This document shows positions 13,632 to 24,436 of a DNA stretch of 64,000 bases, piece after piece. Source of the DNA: Styela clava (Eukaryota); NCBI RefSeq assembly GCF_964204865.1, contig NC_135251.1, positions 18,538,001 through 18,602,000 of the forward strand, given 5' to 3'. Both the position numbers and the translations under genes were made by a program. Under the pieces are notes generated by a model. That model was not told where the DNA came from. It searched no databases and saw only the letters and a program-made list of their open reading frames with translations. Within the stretch, counting starts at the first letter, position 1; every line of letters starts with the position of its first letter.

Positions 13632-16600
13632 TTAAATTTGATTTGTTCCGCCGACCCATACTCCACCAAACAACTCTTCGGAAGGTTCGGATTCATCATA
13701 TGACCTTAGAAGCATCGTTTCTGGATTATTAGCTGTCTGAAGTCTGTCTTCTTTATTGTCTATTTGGATGCTTCTAATACAATTTTTTCCTGAGTCATCT
13801 CGTGTCATGAGACGTGAAGTTGCATGAAACACCGACCCGTGGTCAGAAGTCCTATCAAAGTTTTTCAGGGAGGAATCTCTTCTTTTTCCACTTGTCATTT
13901 GATTTTCCGATAATACGCCTGCCATAAAAGATAAGGCACAATACAACATTAGATTGGTTCCACATGAAAACCAATCTATTGTTATCCTATTCTGAACGAA
14001 CATTTTGCTGTGACTGCTAGTAGTGAATCGGGAAGCATGCGACTGAAGGTGGTCCTAAAAGGGGATCAATGTGGCTGAGGGTATCTTAAATTTGCGATGC
14101 CAAAATGGTTAGGTATACCCGTCGATAATTCATTATTTTAGCAGTATAATAGCTTTTCCACAAAAACAATGCGTGTTTACATGAAAAAATAAAATAATTA
14201 ATATGGTAAGCAACCTCGTCTTTGTTTCGTTCGTTCAGATCCATCCGCATTAGATCTGAAATATGTGGACAACGTCCTGGATCTGATTACCGATCTTCCA
14301 CTAACAAAAAAATATAATATATGATTCTCTTTTTCGGCATCTCCATCGGCATATTTGTATTCATCATTATTTCAAATCTTCACTCCGAATAATGCTCTAT
14401 AGCAGCGGTTCCCAAACTATGGGTCGCGACCCACTGGTGGGTCGCAAAAGGAATCTTAGTGGGTCGTGAAAAGATGTGAAAAGCTTTGATTATTTGTACT
14501 GGTTATTAGGATCAGTGGCGAATGGAATACGTAAATCTTCAAAAAAAAAAGGAATTAAATTGAATTTAAATTCTAATCTGTGAAAGTTTCCTTTTTACGA
14601 TCTTCTCAAAGGAACAAAAATTTGCTACACAAAGAATGACCATGTGGCTTTTTCACGCAAGCAGTTTTGTACACTGTACAGCACTTCTTACCGTTTTCCC
14701 CAAAATTTAGACAGGGTTTAGATTTATTTTCGTTTGAAGAATAACACCATGTTTTTTTTTGAAAGAGGTCTTTTGGGTTCATTTATCGAAAATAAAATTA
14801 CATTGTAGAAAATCACGAGATTTTTTAATAAACATTATATAAAAACCGACATCCATTCTTTTTATTTGTATTTCCTATACAAAAATCAAGTGACAAATAT
14901 TATAATTGTGATTGTGACATCACGCAATCTTGAATTGTGGTGTGATCCTCACCTTACCTCAGGTCATTGAACCTTTCCTCTCCCACTCATTTTAAATTTA
15001 TTTTAAGGGTAGGGTTTAATCAAAATCATTTTTAAAATTTAAACTAGGTCTTGTTTTCAGGCCAGGTCTTATTTTCGAGGAAACACGGTAGCTTTGCAAT
15101 GATTAGCCATTGCTGTGTTATGTCACCAAAAAAATAAAAGAATATAAATGGGTCGCCATAAGATGTGGTAATAAATAGTGGGTCGCAACTCTATAAAGTT
15201 TGGGAACCACTGCTCTATAGTACAGCCAGGAACCAGCTATATACACATGCGAAGCTATCATCATTCAGAAGGCTGAATTTTTCGCAGTTTGGCATCGTCT
15301 ACTAAATTTGATTGTACCCTGACTCCTGAGTTGGAACTTATGATGGTTAAACCTGTTTTGTTAATATATGTAGTTTAACATTATACCCATCAATGAAATA
15401 CCAGATATCTGCATAAATATTCCATTGAGCAATTTTGAACCACGATTCAAAAGTTTGTGAGAGAAATTTAATATCAGGGGGTTCATTGAATTTTTTTGCA
15501 TTTCATCTTCTGGAATAGCTTTCATTGTTAATGTTGGAGTGCCCAATGCAGAAATATTTCATATATGGGTGTTGTTGAATAATTGTTAATAGGGGTTCCG
15601 TGATGAGCCCAAACGCATAACAGGGGTTCATCGCATTACACACTAAGGCTATTGTTTTTCTTTTCATATTACAAATTTGTAAGAGATGAATGAAACAACG
15701 TAATTTCGATTTCATCGCAAGTAAACACCCAGGACTCCCAAGTTTCATAATGTTGGTGATAGGGTATTGCAGACGGTTGCGCAATCAGTTCAATGCGATA
15801 CATCATTTTTCAATGGTCCAAGTCTAAAAATTAAAATGAATAAAAAGAGTCCGCGGTTGTCAATGATTTATTTATCTTAGTTTATCAATTAACAGTGCCG
15901 AAAAATATATAGATTTTCAGACAGCTTGAGTTCAATTAGATAAGTTGTTTTCAAATATTCTTGGCTTTTTCAAAGTATGGTACAGTTTTCAAGAATGGGC
16001 TTGTGTGGCTTATGGCAAGTAAACGCTTAAACAAATAATACCACTAAAAACATGGTATGGTATACTGTCGCTAAACATATAGCATGACCATATAGTTACG
16101 TAATAGATACTTCAACCGTGCTTCCCAACACCCGAATGCATGTGTTGTGACATGTTGTGCGACTTTTAATTCAATTTTACGACTTTGTCACATTTTGATC
16201 ATAATAAATTACAATCAAAATACGAAATCTTTAATATAGAAAATATTCAATAGATCAAAAGGTTGCAACAAACGGCAACTATCCCATTATTTTTTAATGC
16301 TTTCTTGTATATTCTCACTTTTCGGCACGATCGGCGTTTTCGACGTTGTGCTCTATAACTACGTGACACTTAGGATCAAAATTCGTCTGACATGAATTCA
16401 ATAACATAACATTCAATAACGTAATACTGTGATCAGCATACGCACGCCGTGTGAAACAAAATTCAGGCATTCAGCTTACAGTTGGTCCGGCCCTAAGCGC
16501 CACCATAATTTTTTTGTTTTTGCCCATTGTAATAAACAGTTGCCCGTCCCTGCTATATATATTTGATAAGGAGAATAAATATGAAATGTATCGTTGCGTG

Positions 16601-19600
16601 TATATTTTGTGGCTAACTCTAAATTAATAAGTTAAAACGTGTGTCACCTGAAATTCTGCTTCAACTTGAAACAACCTAAAGCTTTGGATACTTGTGTTCG
16701 AAGTGCAGAACCGACACAGGCATATATGATTGGATTCATGACGGAATTTGCGAATCCAAGACAAACTGTTATCATATGAATGCACCGAATTGTTCTAAAA
16801 AAATAGCAGTATATCATTAACCATCTATTCGAGTAACATTGAACATTTCCAAAATATGCATTCAAGTAGAAGCCAAATGTGTATATTGCTCTCACTGGAT
16901 CTTTATGCTAGTATTCTTTATTTGTATAAAAATCGACTAAGCGGGATTTGTCTACTTCTACATTTTAGTGAGCCATTCCTATATCTCAAGTAGTGAGGTA
17001 TATTTGTATATAGCAAAGTGCATTTCATCCTTGTATGTGTAATAATAATTATAGGAAAGTGTTCAAGTTTGGTTCAAGATTGTAAATGATAAAAGTAATA
17101 AAAAACATATTTACAAAAAGCAGCCTGGATAATTGAGTACAAGGCTCTAATTGTTTTAGTTTTTTTCCGTTTATGGGTGAAATTATCCTAAAATCCAAAT
17201 GCATTTTATTAACTTCATATTTACTTGATACATAAAGCTTGAGATGATTCCTTCTCCTCCGGTATTTTTTCCGCGAAGTTACCAGATTCAGTAGTATGGT
17301 CCATACTAGTTGTTAGAACATTGTTTGATAAGTAGATTGTCGTTGTCTCACTTATAGGATTAAGATGGGAAGTTCGATATCGTGGGGTGCTGTACATAGC
17401 GGTTTGTGTTATCTCTAATTTCGACGAAATCTTTCCCTGATCGAAATTTTCGGTCTAAAATTGAGTTTTAAATTACGTTAAAAAATCACTTCAAAGCATC
17501 CTCGTTCTCTTGCCAGGATTGAGGAACTTGTTTTTTGTTTAAATCTGATCGAATATTCCGACTAGGCGCTAAAAATTAATAATCCAATGGCCCTTAAAAG
17601 CCTATGTTTGTATATACGTCTTGTAATCCACGTATCATCCAATGACGTAAAATGTAATCATGTAATCTGTATGTAAACTACGAAATTGAAACCAGCGTCA
17701 CTGGGTCCATATTCTAGGATAAATAAAGAACTAAGAATTTGGTTTCTGTCACTTTTCTACTTAAGTATATGGAAGAAATATTTCGGAAATATCCAACCCA
17801 TAAATAACTACATTGTCCAAAATTTCATCAGGGGTTCCACATATCACTTATACCTTGTCTGACGTCGCCTACTTCAACGAGGTTGTGCTCGCTTCAAGAA
17901 TGGCGATTTTAAATAAAATATCAATTTCATAACCACCTAAATCATGAATGCGAAAAAAAAAATGTGTAATCTAAATTTCAAATTAATAACGCATCGTAAT
18001 ATTTTCTCTTCGATATCTGATATTCTAGTCAATTTGATTAATTATTCCTAAATCAGTTCATATCACATTTAATTAGCTGATCATGTTTGAAAATAAATTA
18101 TTGGTGACACGTTATTCAACCTACCGTAGTTTCATTTAATCCCCAACCTGACGAGATAAAACGATCGGAAGAACCAATCGTTTGTGTTGCATTCACGTCA
18201 ATCGCGGTTGGCGTTGGACAATAACGAAATAAACCAACCAAGCTCATAAAATGAGTAAAGTTAGTTACCTATAATAAAAATAATTTAATATTTAACTTTG
18301 CATAAATGGTGGCAAAAATAAACGTATTTGCATGTATATTGTTTCTGACCTATTTCCTTGAAATACATTAGGGCAGCAAACAAAAGTGGGTGTAATTGTA
18401 TTTGTACCGCTGCCACTGCAAAGAACTATATATACTTCCACATCTCATGAGATTTAATAATATCAAGTTCAAGAGCTTTTCGCCATTTAATAGTTCTACG
18501 ATAAATGCATGATTGTTGAGCCGCAGATCTATTTATCGGCATTCCATCAACTCTTTGTAGTACTCAAAAATAGTCAGAATAAATTATGGGATTAACGCTA
18601 TCAAATGCATTCACAGTCTATAAAAACAAAATATGGTATCAACAGCTGCAGTGATAATGTTTGATTTCGACATGGGTTCTTGAAATTAAATTTTATAAAT
18701 AAACATATGTTCATATCATATTATTCATCGATTTGATATATAAATCGTTTCAGAAGTATTTAGAAGGCATAGTTAGCTGTGATTTTGGGATGGTAAAATA
18801 ACTCATTGCGTTTTTGATAGCATTTATATTAACTGCAATTTCCGAGTAAAATTGTGCTATTTTCTAAATTAAATTTGACGGCCCTATTTATAAGCTAAGT
18901 TTCCTTGTAGCAGAGACAAATCCCAACGTACCGGTTTGCGAAACAAAAGAGACATTTCGCAGTTTTTATGCTAGTCTAACATTTTAACCAGCATGTATGT
19001 AAGTATAAACTAATTGAAAAAACTGTAATTTCCTCTCATTTTCTAGTAAATGTAAAGCAAACAGAGACAATTTGTGCTTTGACTGATTGCTTAGTCATAT
19101 ATCCTTGCTTTATCGTGCTTGATAAAGCACGGTTAAGTGGTGTATTTTTGAAGTCTCACAATCCAAAGACTTCGACAAACTGTATATTTATTGACATATG
19201 CGATCGTCTAATCTTTGTACGATTTAGTATAATGTTGTTTAAACCACCCTAAAACCCTATGCCCTCGCGTAAACTACTTTATAATAGATATATCATAATT
19301 TAGGTAACATCTCGACATTCTCGTAAACGTTCAGTTCAAAATATTTTCTATGCAGAAGTCCCGATCATTTGAAATAACCGGGTCTTACCATTTATGCTGT
19401 ATTAAGTGATTCTACTTTTATAATATTTTTTTCGTGTAAATTAGATAAAAAGCTAGGAAATAATTTGAATATGACCACATATCATTAACGAAAATATCAC
19501 CAAAAATTGCATTTGTATCTTTAAAAAATTCAACAATTTTATTTTTGGCAATATACAGCCTTTAATTTTTAGGTCGAAGTCCAATAATGTAAAAAGCCGA

Positions 19601-22600
19601 CTTTCATGTCACAATAAAATGATTTGCAGGCTGCAGTTATAAATTGCACAATTAGTATACATTTACACCTTTTATGTACTTATTTCCTTATTTTGCAGTA
19701 GCTCCCAATTTATGCATATTGTTTCTACGGACACTTGTTCAGAGCGAAAACGTGAAACATTTTTTTAAAAAATTATAAATTAAAAATATAAAACTTACTT
19801 GATTTGGCAGCCAAGCAATTACAAAGCAAATGATGACTAGAGCAACCATTTTTGTTATTCTCGATAAACCTGAAAAATAATAAAATATCAGTCTCAGAAG
19901 TGGGTCTAATTTAAGGCGTAATATGTGTTTTATATGCCATTAAACATAAGGTATCGTATAAATCATGATTAAAAAAAACTGAAGGAGAATTTAACCATTT
20001 GAGCGAAAATGTCAATAATACCTTTGTATTTCTTTCCTTTATTCTTGCTTCTTTTTTTCATGAATACGAGAATACTGATGTAGCAATACAGAATGATGGA
20101 CAGAGGAATAACAAAACCAATCAATGTACGCGAAAGAGCATAAACCACATTCAATTGTGAACGAAAGTTGTTCGGAAAAATCCATGCACATCGTTCCCTG
20201 CAAAAATTATAATATTGTTAAAATGTTAAACCTGTAAATTTTTTTTCGTAACTAGCTTTTGTAGTGAATTTCATTCCAAGAACAACGTATGGTGAGGATA
20301 TGTTGATTGTTTATCATTTTAAAAATTGTAGACTTTTATTGTCGCATATTGCTTTCGTACAGGAGGAGGTTACACCATGACAAAAATCATTCAAGACAAA
20401 TCTGACAGCTTGTCCCTGGCGTGGGTGGCTACAATAAAAATTGCAATTTAAACAGAACGAGTGAAATTTATGAAAAATCGATATCTTCCCAATTTTACTC
20501 ACATATTAAGTGAGTTTTATACAACAAATTAAATTTATTTCAGAAGGTGATAATTAGAACGCAAGGACTCTGACCCGTCAGTTATCGAAGGTAACGATTA
20601 ATATACGTACATTCAATAAACAATTTTCTGTTTTCAAATTTTATCTTGCTTCCGTGGACAACTTTTTATACCAAATTTTTAGACCCCCTCTCCGTAAAAA
20701 ACTCTGTGTACACAGTTAACGATTTGTCACAAGCTACTATTTTTGTATTTATCAATGTTAACTAACCACCTTTATTACATCAAGGGTGAAGTAGTGGGCA
20801 TGAATCTTGAGACTGGGAACTTTAACCTGTGAACCAAGATAGTTAAAGGCTATTGTATCAATAGTAAATGTAATGTATTTGAACAAACCTATCTTCTCCC
20901 AGTACTAATGTATTACGAAATGCTAATGGGAAAATGGTGAATATGAGGCACACCGTCCAAACAATTCCAGTATTTATCCAGGCTCTTCGTACCGTCCTAG
21001 TTTTTCTGCTTTGAACAGCCTGAAAATAATATTATACGTATACCAATAGAACGAGAATATTGAATTATTAAGAAGATGAGAACTGTTGTTTTTTGGACAG
21101 GGAAAAAAATCGAAATTTATTTTCGTATTGAAAACTTGTTATACAGTAGTATAGGATACGTTTTTGAGCATGAATATCCACTGAATATCACAAATTCGAC
21201 TGACTAATAATTTTAATAAAAGTTCAATCTTTATTTGTTATTTGTATATGGGATTATATTTTCCTTATTATATATCGCCCACATACGTAATTGTATGATT
21301 TAATATATGATCGACATGATAGTCATTTCCCTTAATTGCGCAGTCTATCCGATCAATCAAGCACCTGTTTAGATAGCAAGTCAAACATAGAATGTAATAT
21401 ACCTGGACGACAGCTAACCAACGGTCTAATCCCATAGCTGTCAGAAAGAAGATCGATCCGTACATGTTGAAAAAGGATACGGCGCTCAAAATCTGAAATA
21501 AAAACTGTTGATTATTTCAAAAGTTCAAAGTTTGTTTTACTTGAAGCCGGCATTCCAGGCCCATGAGTGTACTACCCGCAAATACTTCTGTCCATAAAAA
21601 TGAACAGTTTTTATATCATGCTTAACAAAAGCTATCGGAGTGGGGTGCTATCAAAGCGAGGGATAATTTGTTCAAATAACTTGATCATACTAATTATTAG
21701 AATTTGAGATGATGTTTCGGTCGCAAGTCAGTCGCCGTTAGTTTGATTCTAGGGATTAGCTTAGAAAAGAGAGCGCCACAAGCTCGCAATGAGCTGCAAC
21801 GTATTAAATACGCACGCACATGAATTAACTAATTCTTATGGGAAATGGAATTCATCATCTGGAAAATTGCATGGTCGTATTTTGTCACAATTATGTAATC
21901 GGATTTAAGTTCGGCTGTACGGTCCGTAGCGTGCAAGATTAGTCCGCATCAATGTATGGACATTTTATCCTTCAGGAGTTTTTGTATAGCAACTTCGTTT
22001 ATTTGCTGGCACAATTATAGAACGTGTAAGTACAATGACGAAAAGGTTTAAAGTAATTAAGAAAGTCTCTGCTGAATCTGAAAAATCTCGGTTCATCTAG
22101 TAAAATTTAAGCAACGAGCTGTATAGAGTTTTTTGGAAGTCAATATCTCAAAAATAACTAGAAATAAATTCCACATATATATATATATTAAAATCAATCA
22201 CATAGCCTAAAGCTTTCATACACACGGTATTGTATTACAGAAAGCACAAATGCTAATATAACGTAATAAGCAGACGATATTTTTCAATATTAAATCACGT
22301 TTTTATAATTGTTGGAAAAAAATATGACTTGGTAGGTTTTTCATCTAGTTTCTAGGAGTAATAAATTCAAATCAATTGTCATGAAACATGTGATAACGTT
22401 CAGAAATTCATCTATAGATACTAGAAATAAGACAATAGTATAAGATAAGGCACGGTGGTTCGATGAATCGCAGTCTGTACCACGTGTTACAATTGCAGTG
22501 GCAATTTTCACATGCTGTGTAATTTTGTGCTGAGAGTTATTTAATTGCCATTCAAAATGGGACGAAATAATACTGAACCTTTTCTAAAAATAATTGCGGT

Positions 22601-24436
22601 CTGCGTTAAAAATTAGCTTTATCTCACTCGGTAAAAAGTAGCATAATATGATACTTCAAAAAGAATGTTACGCGAAGCGAGATCAATTCACCTGTGTTGT
22701 ATTTTCTTGGTAATATTTTGCTTTGTATTTTAATTTATATGGTACTCCATAGCTCGTTCGCATGTTAAAGGAAACTGTCACCAAGTGTAACTAAATTGTT
22801 GGCATTGCTTTTCACTTAAACTATTCCAGTCTACAAGCTGTCGAATTTCATAAAACTAGCTGAACATTTTCAAAAAAGCATGTTGGATTTAGGTAAGATG
22901 CATTTAACACTGCTCCCTTGAGACAAAATTTGCATTAATGGGAGAGCACTGATTCAATATTTGTTGAAATTGTGAAATGCCAGATGCTAAATTGTTGACG
23001 ATAAGTCACCACAGCTACTTCATGATGGTATCTCAATGTGATATTCATTTTTTAATATTCATTTGTCATAAAGTACACCGAACGTTTAGAAGTTTTTATA
23101 TGCAATTGTGTATATTTGAATTTTGCTGGGATTCTTAATAATAAAAGTGTCCTTAAACGACATTTATGAGTGTCTTCAAGATTTTGATAAAGTGATATTG
23201 TGGACATCAAATCGCCGATCCATCGTGTGATAATTGTGCAGCTCCGTTGAACGTAAAAATGAACAAAATCAATTATGCTACTAAAATGGGGTTTTGGCTT
23301 TGTAGTGGTAATATTTGTGCCAACAGTAAGTGCTAAGTTTCGGAGCATTTGGGTGCCGTGTCCTATGTGTTTGTGTCTGTCACCCGGCCAAATTAAAATC
23401 TACAATCGGCGTTGGGTAGTATAAAGAAGAATACATTACTTCGTGATGCAGCGCTATAACGCAATGCGGAGTAGAGCGTTATTACAATTTTGAAACGGGT
23501 TGAACAATTTAGCCCAATTTTTTTTATTTCATATCTAGAACCTTACTGAATTGTGCTATACATCATGCCTGATATTCCGCACAAATTTAAATTGACAAAT
23601 GTGTTTTCAGCATGTGAAATAATAAACAATCCAAAATATACAAAAATTCCATTTACATTATCTAAACAAAGACGGCTGATCTCAAAATTGTTTAATGTCA
23701 ATTTACTGCTATGACGCCGTCGACAGTGCGAAAAGGTTAGCAAAATCGCTGTCAAATGAGATATTCTAATTTCAGATGTGACAGTATAGCATTGAATTTC
23801 TCAACTAATAACAAAGATATTCAATGAAAGTTTATAGTAAATCATAACCTTGCATAATGCATCTCCAAATATCCAATTGTCCCAAAATAGTTCGTGCGCC
23901 CAGAAAGGAAGCGTTGAAACGAATAGTAAATCCGCAATAGACAAGTTTGTAACGTAAACATCAGTAACGGACTTTGTCTAAAAATACAAATCTCTGGCTG
24001 ATTAATTTTAGGAGTAGAATCAATATCAATTATACAATCAACAATTGACTTCGACAACATTTTATATCTAGAGATTGTCTACTCATGTAACCCGAGACGA
24101 AAATTAAGTTTTGTAACCGTATGCACAGCTGTGTACAAATAGTAGTGAAGATCGGTAAAATAAGTGAATTTTTAACTAGTTTTAGTTTGTTTTCTGTGAT
24201 GGCGACTCAAATGGTATTTCCAGTAGTAGTTTATCCATTTTACAACTATATCTACTTTTTGCCTTCTAATTTCACAAATGTTCTATTTTTATGAGTTCCG
24301 CGGTTATAGTATCTAGCTCACTCACCTTCACGAAAAAAGTCATTACATAGATAACCAGTCCATTGCCAAATATTCCTACAACAGCCAAAACACAGTATGT
24401 TGTTGGTACTATCATGCGTTCCACCACGACATCCAT
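13632..24436 (-). CDS. Class A GPCR, angiotensin II type-1/chemoattractant-receptor-like, ~533 aa, with greatly enlarged ECL3
   Basis: Eleven phase-consistent GT-AG exons: 24436-24326 (TM1 [20 protein letters not shown]), 23977-23849 ([22 protein letters not shown]), 21492-21403 ([17 protein letters not shown]), 21019-20889 (TM4), 20197-20022 (ECL2 Cys, GFVIPL), 19869-19799 (AWLPNQ), 18268-18125, 17454-17225, 16794-16648 (NSVMNPIIY), 14300-14215 and 13918-13632. The last two exons are less certain. Confidence 0.9.
14403..15212. mobile_element. hAT (Charlie/SPIN-like) non-autonomous element in a GPCR intron
   Basis: TIRs are CAGCGGTTCCCAAACT and AGTTTGGGAACCACTG. A perfect 8-bp TSD CTCTATAG lies at 14395-14402 and 15213-15220. 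Subterminal GGGTCGC motifs are present. Confidence 0.92.

Follow-up and report, generated by a model that had tools for sequence, protein, structure and literature searches.

How much sequence can a class A G protein-coupled receptor (GPCR) carry between TM6 and TM7, and what could an insertion at that site be for? These questions are raised by a gene on the reverse strand of a 64,000-nucleotide stretch of Styela clava DNA (NC_135251.1, positions 18,538,001 to 18,602,000; hereafter the window), where an initial annotation made from the letters had placed two exons between TM6 and TM7 of a GPCR.

The window encodes an orphan class A receptor

To establish the gene, we assembled the chain of exons listed in Table 1, which comes to 1602 nt including the stop codon, and in which 10 of 10 introns are bounded by GT..AG. 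All 11 exon translations are contained, exactly and in order, in isoform X1 of the S. clava RefSeq gene LOC120335243 (XP_039258653.2, P0003 in our set; 533 aa), in agreement with the coordinates, strand and splice sites originally given for the two exons between TM6 and TM7. The genomic flanks are ...tattatag before and gtaggt after exon 7 (144 nt, phase 0 to 0), and ...aattttag before and gtaaat after exon 8 (230 nt, phase 0 to 2); each of the two exons has one open frame. A search with exon 7 returned the RefSeq protein at 96% identity over residues 237-284. The RefSeq proteins of LOC120335243 are predictions, formerly named 'somatostatin receptor type 2-like' and now listed as 'uncharacterized protein', and no mention of 'LOC120335243' was found in open-access text.

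Table 1. Features of the receptor gene, in positions of the window
Feature	Position	Strand	Evidence
Class A GPCR gene, whole coding span, 11 exons	13632..24436	-	Open chain, GT..AG introns, RefSeq match, Pfam 7tm_1
Exon 1: start codon, extracellular N-terminus of ~8 residues, TM1	24326..24436	-	AF2 helix from residue 2
Exon 2: TM2, ECL1, TM3 Cys	23849..23977	-	Exon chain
Exon 3: TM3 with DRW (DRY position)	21403..21492	-	Exon chain
Exon 4: ICL2, TM4	20889..21019	-	Exon chain
Exon 5: short ECL2 with conserved Cys, TM5, ICL3	20022..20197	-	Exon chain
Exon 6: TM6 first half, to WLPNQ motif	19799..19869	-	Exon chain
Exon 7 (residues 237-284): TM6 second half, Cys253, 31 loop residues including N262, N281	18125..18268	-	Exon chain
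Exon 8 (residues 285-361): rest of Ser/Thr-rich loop, Cys359, N-terminal extension of TM7 helix	17225..17454	-	
Exon 9: Cys365, TM7 (NPIIY), helix 8	16648..16794	-	Aligns to AT1R TM7
Exon 10: C-terminal tail; skipped in annotated isoform X2 (430 aa, frameshifted tail)	14215..14300	-	
Exon 11: end of C-terminal tail, stop codon	13632..13918	-	

The product matched Pfam PF00001 (7tm_1) over residues 24-244 (192.8 bits, E = 9.6e-57; cut-off 30.5 bits), the match being cut short by the insertion; exons 1, 6, 7 and 8 searched singly gave no Pfam matches, as expected for pieces so short. The class A landmarks N1.50, D2.50, the TM3-ECL2 Cys pair, P5.50 and NPxxY are present, with two departures: the DRY position reads DRW, and CWxP has Ala in place of Cys (WLP). 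Seven residues (N25, D53, C79, R104, P185, P234 and P382) occupy columns that are invariant in 115 homologues, and the column of C157 is nearly so (at least 90%). When solved structures were ranked, AT1R (9q0f_A) came first (E = 1.3e-42), and the E-values of CXCR4, SSTR2 and the kappa-opioid receptor lay only a few orders of magnitude behind; SSTR2 (E 9e-39) was weaker than AT1R and CXCR4. The original call of a GPCR is thus upheld as class A, with AT1R as the best solved match. In a tree whose rows were drawn without AT1R, SSTR and apelin receptors, the protein fell in a tunicate clade with the transcript-derived protein P0008 and the Styela paralogue P0012, beside RXFP3 (support 87/83). S. 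clava thus has a genuine orphan class A GPCR gene here, present in one copy and of the peptide/chemoattractant type.

The third extracellular loop is enlarged to about 110 residues

The predicted ECL3 is enlarged to ~110 residues by a long exon 7, which runs past TM6, and by an extra exon, exon 8. It starts at Cys253, a few residues past TM6, and runs to Cys359/Cys365, which sit on a stretch of helix that extends TM7, while its middle of ~85-95 residues is rich in Ser, Thr and Asn, non-hydrophobic and predicted without confident structure. The HMMER alignment to AT1R stops at query residue 260 (chain position 288) and picks up again at 368 (chain position 292), which gives 104 extra residues, the same figure as in the initial annotation. 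That annotation had placed both exons between TM6 and TM7, but the first 17 residues of exon 7 are TM6; the insertion is encoded by part of exon 7 and by exon 8.

Ser and Thr make up 31 of 107 residues (261-367) or 33 of 109 (254-362), depending on where the loop is bounded, in line with the earlier hand count of 32/104 (~31%), and are enriched over the 7TM core (binomial p = 1e-6). The two N-glycosylation sequons reported at the outset, NAT and NET, are present in the loop at N262 and N281. Its charge is mixed (13 acidic and 8 basic residues), and only 5 of its 109 residues are Pro. Neither the loop protein nor the exon DNA contains a tandem repeat, the only arrays being three short ones in introns or at boundaries with scores of 37 or less.

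In the AF2 model, which has seven TM helices and helix 8, pLDDT exceeds 90 in TM1-6 and falls below 50 over residues 258-342, and the TM7 helix begins at residue 351; since the alignment depth in the loop is near nil, the low pLDDT there is weak evidence of disorder. A hidden TM segment in the loop was ruled out by hydropathy (0.18 for the top 19-residue stretch). Searching the ESM Atlas with the loop returned no usable match. Chemokine receptors and C3aR have docking sites in which a sulfotyrosine lies beside acidic residues; the tyrosines of the Styela loop have no acidic neighbours, which counts against a docking role.

The insertion interrupts a loop of rigid length

To place the loop within its family, we compared the spacing of conserved residues in 115 homologues. 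The P6.50-P7.50 spacing is 148 in the Styela receptor against a median of 44 (5th-95th percentile 42-45), and the largest value outside the clade of Styela and P0008 is 46. The length of ECL3 is among the least variable dimensions of the family, with a spacing of 42-45 in 90% of the homologues, because the loop connects TM6 and TM7, which change shape during activation, and lines the rim of the ligand pocket. A profile built from P0003, P0008 and P0126, the last a transcript-derived protein like P0008, retrieved no further proteins with an ECL3 insertion.

At the other extracellular segments, 24 residues precede N1.50 in the Styela receptor against a median of 55 in the 115 homologues, and the W4.50-P5.50 spacing, which spans ECL2, is 54 against a median of 51. 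Outside the helices and the cytosolic tail, the only sequons are those at N262 and N281. Angiotensin- and chemokine-type receptors are known from solved structures to have a second disulfide, which links an N-terminal Cys to a Cys in ECL3. The Styela receptor has no Cys before TM1, so that Cys253 lacks an N-terminal partner, and Cys253, Cys359 and Cys365 are present in or near the loop.

A related receptor is expanded at the same site

The nearest relative of the Styela receptor is P0008/P0126 (proteins from Logan and JGI), with 38% identity and a sister position in the tree (90/85). Its ECL3 is expanded in the same place, by 33 residues in P0008 (P6.50-P7.50 spacing 77) and by 52 in the longer form. 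The two receptors share a Cys past TM6 and another where the TM7 helix is extended, a Ser/Thr content of 29-30% and two early-loop sequons; they differ in that the expansion of the relative is one third of that in Styela and its N-terminus is normal, with 52 residues before N1.50 and two sequons. P0126 and P0008 differ by 19 residues inside ECL3, which indicates that splicing within the loop varies in that species; one idea, suggested by the possible codons, is that the 19 extra residues of P0126 could be a retained 57-nt intron. A JGI metagenome scan for P0126 gave 75 pattern matches, none of which encodes a relative.

At the sequence level, the Styela and P0008 loops reached a Smith-Waterman score of 25, compared with 25.1 +/- 4.5 for shuffles, and 989 of 2000 shuffles reached 25. 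The sequence constraint between the two loops therefore looks weak, and a common origin of the expansions is unsupported by their sequence. Conserved loop ends, proposed from MAFFT columns (Ser-Ser-Asp and Cys-Ile-Lys), were dropped after the shuffle test gave them no backing.

These comparisons bear on the possibility that the loop is a tolerated passenger: intron-derived or slipped sequence would have turned into exon, with exon 7 reading on past its old donor and exon 8 made from intron, and the product would be a disordered spacer, weakly constrained and with no part specific to the ligand, on a receptor whose ordinary 7TM pocket works. Such an origin is consistent with the shuffle-level similarity, with a threefold difference in loop length between the relatives (spacings 148 and 77), and with the AF2 model, which shows no confident loop structure. 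It also agrees with the paralogue P0012, in which an intron lies within a short ECL3 about where exon 7 reads on, intron positions being different between the Styela paralogues, and with the allelic substitutions, which cluster in the loop (3 of 4 differences in P0006 and 2 of 7 in P0001 fall within 109 of 533 residues). On the other hand, the 109-residue frame is open in three allelic forms, and P0008/P0126 has a comparable Ser/Thr content, a Cys pair and early sequons as well. Moreover, the receptor has no N-terminal segment and bears its only exposed N-glycosylation sequons in the loop, and, with the spacing held to 42-45 across the family, the pocket would probably be affected by so large an insert in ECL3. 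We consider a passenger origin possible but doubtful.

Gene models and k-mer content support use of exons 7 and 8

If exons 7 and 8 were minor or non-productive, the functional receptor would have a short ECL3, made through other splice sites. Two observations leave some room for this: the RefSeq proteins are predictions, and the 19-residue difference between P0126 and P0008 shows that splicing at this place varies in the species they come from. However, both exons are kept in six of six public protein models (three allelic forms and two isoforms), with the loop open and in frame, and the second half of TM6 requires exon 7. Skipping of exon 8 puts exon 9 out of frame and removes TM7, as had been argued when exon 8 was first described as the exon that keeps TM7 in frame. 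The GC contents of exons 7 and 8 (0.40 and 0.39) are exon-like, compared with 0.28-0.36 in the introns. Openness alone is weak evidence for either exon, since the introns of the gene contain four stop-free stretches of at least 76 codons, and stretches equally long thus arise there by chance.

As a second line of evidence, sampled words of positions 16600-20250 were counted in small runs. Five runs, whose type was guessed to be RNA and whose words could be intronic, contained 0.10-0.17 of them, where the ceiling is 0.171 for the fully spliced mRNA and 0.084 for an mRNA without exons 7 and 8. All five exceed what exons 5, 6 and 9 alone can supply, and the best (0.17) comes close to the all-exon value. 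A search among fragments for transcript-derived partial proteins spanning TM6, the loop and TM7 found none (42 candidates, none scored).

A short-loop receptor that bypasses these exons is accordingly improbable. The gene models, together with the indirect k-mer argument, indicate that exons 7 and 8 are probably used constitutively, and we hold it highly probable that the predicted anatomy is true and transcribed as modelled.

A repeat or transposon origin of the two exons was rejected: no second copy of either was present in the 377-Mb genome (next matches E ~2), and as single-copy sequences they are not repeat-derived. Separately, of eight runs whose type was guessed as RNA, three contained zero sampled words of 16600-20250, which suggests that expression is restricted by tissue or stage.

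A proposed role of the loop as the main extracellular appendage

The initial annotation proposed that a glycosylated loop could serve as a ligand-capture surface, a shield or a protease-cleavable element. One version of this is a regulatory loop: a lid or tether that keeps the pocket closed until cleavage or displacement, or a switch that senses a protease. Its one argument is anatomical, since the insertion is long and flexible and is fixed to both sides of the pocket, between TM6 and TM7, which move when the receptor is activated. A regulatory loop is nevertheless very improbable given that the Styela and P0008 loops share no conserved sequence, that a phrase search of the open-access literature gave no such class A ECL3 case, and that we know of no class A receptor regulated by an ECL3 lid or switch.

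We lean, by a little over even chances, toward an orphan GPCR in which an ECL3 lariat is the main extracellular appendage. The loop is taken as the main appendage because the N-terminus is nearly absent, ECL2 is short and no other segment predicted to be extracellular has an N-glycosylation sequon. We hypothesize that its ends are joined by a disulfide, in which case the insertion would form a flexible, glycosylated lariat suspended from the mouth of the receptor. It may carry glycans needed for maturation, and it may form an outer vestibule or first docking surface for the ligand. In chemokine and angiotensin-type receptors, ligand docking and glycans are the business of the N-terminus, and in C3aR of ECL2. 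A specific role of the loop as a surrogate N-terminus, serving as main appendage, glycan carrier and ligand-docking site, is put forward tentatively, and the weak constraint on the loop sequence and the density of allelic differences within it count against it. That the job of the N-terminus (glycans and first ligand capture) moved to a disulfide-closed ECL3 lariat of ~100 residues in the lineage of this tunicate receptor, through exon recruitment, we offer with a little less confidence still; it would amount to relocating a GPCR module in the topology of the receptor.

The Styela receptor provides a natural test of how much ECL3 can carry without breaking signalling, and of whether ligand capture and glycan-dependent maturation can be served from ECL3. 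It also adds to the signs of outer-loop remodelling by exon addition in ascidian GPCRs, beside the giant ECL2 of C3aR-like genes. Its practical reach is that of an orphan receptor from a non-model species, known solely as a predicted gene model.

Comparison with known receptors and mucins

The Styela receptor resembles AT1R in its 7TM core, and its Cys253 shares an alignment position with the Cys in ECL3 of AT1R. It differs by its 104 extra ECL3 residues, its near-absent N-terminus and the absence of an N-terminal Cys.

With C3aR and the ascidian C3a/C5aR-like receptors it shares a chemoattractant-type class A fold with one enlarged extracellular loop. The initial annotation mentioned a Ciona C3a-receptor-like protein with an enlarged TM6-TM7 loop, which is mistaken: in the part of PMC7565592 consulted, all ascidian C3a/C5aR-like receptors have their large loop between TM4 and TM5, in ECL2. 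The same part describes the ECL2 of C3a-type receptors, enlarged by at least 100 residues, as Asp/Glu-rich, with a key Tyr, and as docking the ligand; by this mark of a large acidic ECL2 (PMC7565592, as consulted), the Styela receptor, with its spacing of 54 against 51, falls outside the group. Consistent with that description, the Ciona relative P0019 has a giant ECL2 (spacing 127) and not a giant ECL3. The Styela receptor has an ordinary ECL2; its enlarged loop, ECL3, is rich in Ser and Thr and has no acidic Tyr motif.

In the open-access literature, our search for a long ECL3 returned only class F receptors, non-GPCR proteins, a paper on adenosine A3 and a six-residue crustacean insertion. 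Within the portions of text returned, Smoothened and Frizzled (class F) were the sole GPCRs described with a 'long' or 'extended' ECL3, and in this they resemble the Styela receptor. The class F ECL3 is structured, measures a few tens of residues and packs on the cysteine-rich domain. The Styela receptor belongs to another GPCR class, and its loop is ~100 residues long and Ser/Thr-rich.

Finally, the loop had been called mucin-like. It is Ser/Thr-rich, at 30%, and like mucin-type (PTS) domains it is predicted to be extracellular and without predicted structure. Classical mucin domains, however, have very high Ser/Thr and Pro contents and usually tandem repeats, whereas the Styela loop is poor in Pro, free of repeats, mixed in charge and much lower in Ser/Thr density. 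The term is therefore too strong, and Ser/Thr-rich describes the loop better.

Exons 7 and 8 encode the expanded third extracellular loop

Strand reading followed by a scripted check resolved the GPCR gene (LOC120335243) into 11 exons running from 24436 to 13632 on the minus strand, with a coding chain of 1602 nt, stop included. All introns are GT..AG, each acceptor lies behind a pyrimidine-rich tract, and the required phase is open in every exon. Exons 7 and 8 sit between exon 6 (TM6) and exon 9 (TM7), and both have stops in their two alternative frames. The initial annotation had proposed these segments as exons and the second of them as necessary for the TM7 frame. Splice sites and phases bear out the former, and the latter holds as well, since exon 9 is misread and TM7 lost when exon 8 is left out.

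Coordinates of the features described in the text
Feature	Position	Strand	Remark
Exon 1	24326-24436	minus	start of the coding chain
Intron 2	21493-23848	minus	several open segments bounded by AG..GT
Exon 6	19869-19799	minus	ends in the WLPNQ motif of TM6
Exon 7	18268-18125	minus	144 nt, phase 0 to 0
Exon 8	17454-17225	minus	230 nt, phase 0 to 2
Exon 9	16794-16648	minus	TM7 with NPIIY
Intron 9 motif copies	~14400-14490 and 15140-15210		GGGTCGCGACCCA-type, both orientations
Exon 10	14300-14215	minus	86 nt
Intronless paralogue (L006)	G000:C2:12320627-12321598		501-aa GPCR, same chromosome
Tandem array (L015, L016)	G000:C3:2931781-2971869		upstream of the P0012 gene

At the 5' end, exon 1 supplies an extracellular N-terminus of only ~8 residues, without a sequon or a Cys. 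A TAG in the same frame is found 18 nt before its ATG, and because the ATG is directly preceded by 'ag', a further coding exon upstream, absent from the annotation, is conceivable. Within the introns, the motif copies of intron 9, found by eye, may form a small inverted-repeat element, while the open segments (intronic sense-strand stop-free stretches of 115, 93, 85, and 80 codons, and the AG..GT-bounded ones of intron 2) may represent a decayed element or chance.

The gene is represented in RefSeq by an uncharacterized predicted model

When exon 7 alone (48 aa) was used as a query against 1.84 billion representative proteins, it returned one match, the 533-aa protein P0001, with 96% identity at residues 237-284. 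The 90% cluster of P0001 consists of six Styela clava RefSeq/UniRef proteins, three of 533 aa, named "somatostatin receptor type 2-like isoform X1" and later "uncharacterized protein LOC120335243 isoform X1", and three of 430 aa, named "type-1 angiotensin II receptor-like isoform X2". Each of the 11 exon translations recurs exactly, and in order, within the 533-aa isoform X1 (XP_039258653.2, P0003), on which the loop, profile, structure, and homologue analyses were based. The gene is thus already in RefSeq as an uncharacterized predicted model; an open-access literature search found it named in no paper. Exons 7 and 8 are kept in 6/6 public models. The 430-aa isoform differs solely by skipping exon 10; exon 11 is then read in a shifted frame, and 21 different residues stand in place of the last 124 of the tail. 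Annotated splice variation is thus confined to the cytosolic tail and leaves the loop untouched.

Could the loop be an artefact of the gene model? Four stop-free stretches of at least 76 codons occur in the introns of this gene, so an open frame by itself is weak proof of exons 7 and 8. Their GC content (0.40 and 0.39) lies within that of the other exons (0.35-0.46; introns, 0.28-0.36), neither has a second copy in the 377-Mb genome, and three allelic forms keep the loop frame open. We also looked for 31-letter words sampled from 16600-20250 in sequencing runs. Five small runs from two studies (55-79 million contig letters; presumed to be RNA) contain 0.10-0.17 of them, and three further Styela clava runs contain none. 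The full spliced mRNA would account for at most 618/3621 words (0.171), compared with 0.084 without exons 7 and 8 and 0.115 without exon 8 alone; the best run reaches the all-exon ceiling (0.17 vs 0.171), although the word share cannot tell which words are present. A protein search found no partial transcript-derived protein spanning TM6 to TM7.

The loop is an outlier in length but not strictly mucin-like

The protein matches Pfam 7tm_1 with 192.8 bits, the match ending at residue 244. Among solved structures, its sequence matches AT1R best (9q0f_A, E = 1.3e-42). Alignment to AT1R runs to query residue 260 and resumes at 368, corresponding to chain positions 288 and 292, which gives 104 extra residues, the figure put forward in the initial annotation; query Cys253 aligns with the ECL3 Cys of AT1R. 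Among 115 aligned homologues, the distance between the TM6 and TM7 prolines has a median of 44 (5th-95th percentile, 42-45). The two Styela forms reach 148 and the transcript-derived relative P0008 reaches 77, and the next largest value is 46, placing this ECL3 far outside the loop length of its relatives.

Ser and Thr make up 33/109 of residues 254-362 (30%, vs 12.6% over residues 1-253; binomial p = 1e-6). The same stretch has 5 prolines, 13 acidic and 8 basic side chains, and sequons N262 and N281, and Cys residues lie at 253, 359, and 365. A hidden TM segment was ruled out, the maximum 19-residue hydropathy being 0.18. The term mucin-like, applied earlier to the insertion, fits the Ser/Thr enrichment but is too strong given the few prolines and the absence of a tandem repeat in the exon DNA. 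On these data, the loop is Ser/Thr-rich and probably glycosylated and flexible.

AlphaFold2, run on the 115-row alignment, returned a confident 7TM core (pLDDT > 90 for TM1-6) with the insertion at low confidence between TM6 and TM7. TM6 ends at 247, and pLDDT falls below 50 across residues 258-342. The TM7 helix begins at 351 and thus takes in the final ten residues of exon 8. The loop is almost uncovered in this alignment, so low pLDDT there is weak evidence of disorder, with which the composition agrees.

Loop expansion is shared with one close relative in position but not in sequence

Between them, a whole-protein and a profile search turned up a single close relative whose ECL3 is enlarged, P0008 (479 aa), together with its cluster mate P0126 (498 aa, JGI source). 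P0008 comes from a 1649-nt Logan contig, too short for anything but a spliced transcript. In a 36-row tree, which has long branches and no AT1R, apelin, or SSTR rows, P0008/P0126 form the sister lineage of the Styela protein with an ultrafast bootstrap of 90 and an SH-aLRT of 85, followed outward by the Styela paralogue P0012 (94/87) and then fish RXFP3 (87/83). The P0008 loop has 33 extra residues. Like the Styela loop, it has one Cys soon after TM6 and another on the helix extension of TM7, a Ser/Thr content of 30%, and two sequons close to its start. Similarity between the two loops is at chance level (score 25 vs 25.1 +/- 4.5; 989/2000 shuffles reach 25), so what they have in common is place, composition, and Cys framing, and the loop sequence does not support a single origin of the expansions. 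P0126 carries 19 residues more than P0008 inside ECL3, indicating that splicing inside the loop varies in this relative; the codons flanking them could encode a GT...AG intron.

ECL3 is ordinary in the two Styela paralogues examined, P0012 and the intronless ORF on L006, the latter with a moderately long, sequon-rich ECL2. In the P0012 gene, TM6 lies within one exon and an intron falls inside the short ECL3, so intron positions differ between the two genes. Loop growth by readthrough of an old donor site and recruitment of intronic sequence would fit this arrangement but is not proven. The tandem array upstream of the P0012 gene comprises at least 11 units of ~3.75 kb, and two units compared are 99.9% identical. 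Each bears a copy of the first exon of that gene, 77% identical to residues 9-52, and the ATG of the copy lies in a different frame.

Possible role of the loop and comparison with known receptors

These results show that a long segment, hydrophilic and rich in Ser and Thr, is attached where TM6 and TM7 reach the extracellular side. The N-terminus of the receptor is short (24 residues before N1.50 vs a median of 55 in the 115 homologues; AlphaFold2 helix from residue 2), ECL2 is short and normal, and sequons other than N262 and N281 occur only in TM2, TM6, and the cytosolic tail, with none in other exposed segments. In solved structures of AT1R-type receptors, the ECL3 Cys is bonded to an N-terminal Cys. 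We hypothesize that Cys253, having no such partner, bonds Cys359 or Cys365 and closes the loop as a lariat, that N262 and N281 carry glycans, as probably do some Ser/Thr, and that the loop would stand in for the N-terminus of related receptors, serving glycan-dependent maturation and offering an outer surface for docking. In the main rival reading, the loop is a fast-evolving passenger that the receptor tolerates; its lack of sequence conservation and an excess of allelic changes within it favor this reading. A docking site like that of chemokine receptors is disfavored, as the loop tyrosines lack acidic surroundings.

The protein is an orphan class A GPCR with a genuine structural outlier in ECL3, a testable feature whose loop sequence is not conserved. 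Searches of open-access text for long, large, extended, or inserted ECL3 loops pointed to the class F receptors Smoothened and Frizzled, non-GPCR membrane proteins, and crustacean receptors with a six-residue insertion (PMC10828670); within that text, no class A receptor was described with so large an ECL3. The initial annotation had offered an enlarged TM6-TM7 loop in a Ciona C3a-receptor-like protein as a parallel, which does not stand: in the retrieved part of the Botryllus C3a/C5aR paper (PMC7565592), all ascidian C3aR-like receptors have their large loop between TM4 and TM5. The Ciona intestinalis relative P0019 (XP_002120222.3, "somatostatin receptor type 2-like") has this C3aR-type arrangement, with a giant ECL2 (W4.50-P5.50 spacing of 127 vs a median of 51) and an ordinary ECL3, whereas the Styela receptor enlarges the loop between TM6 and TM7.
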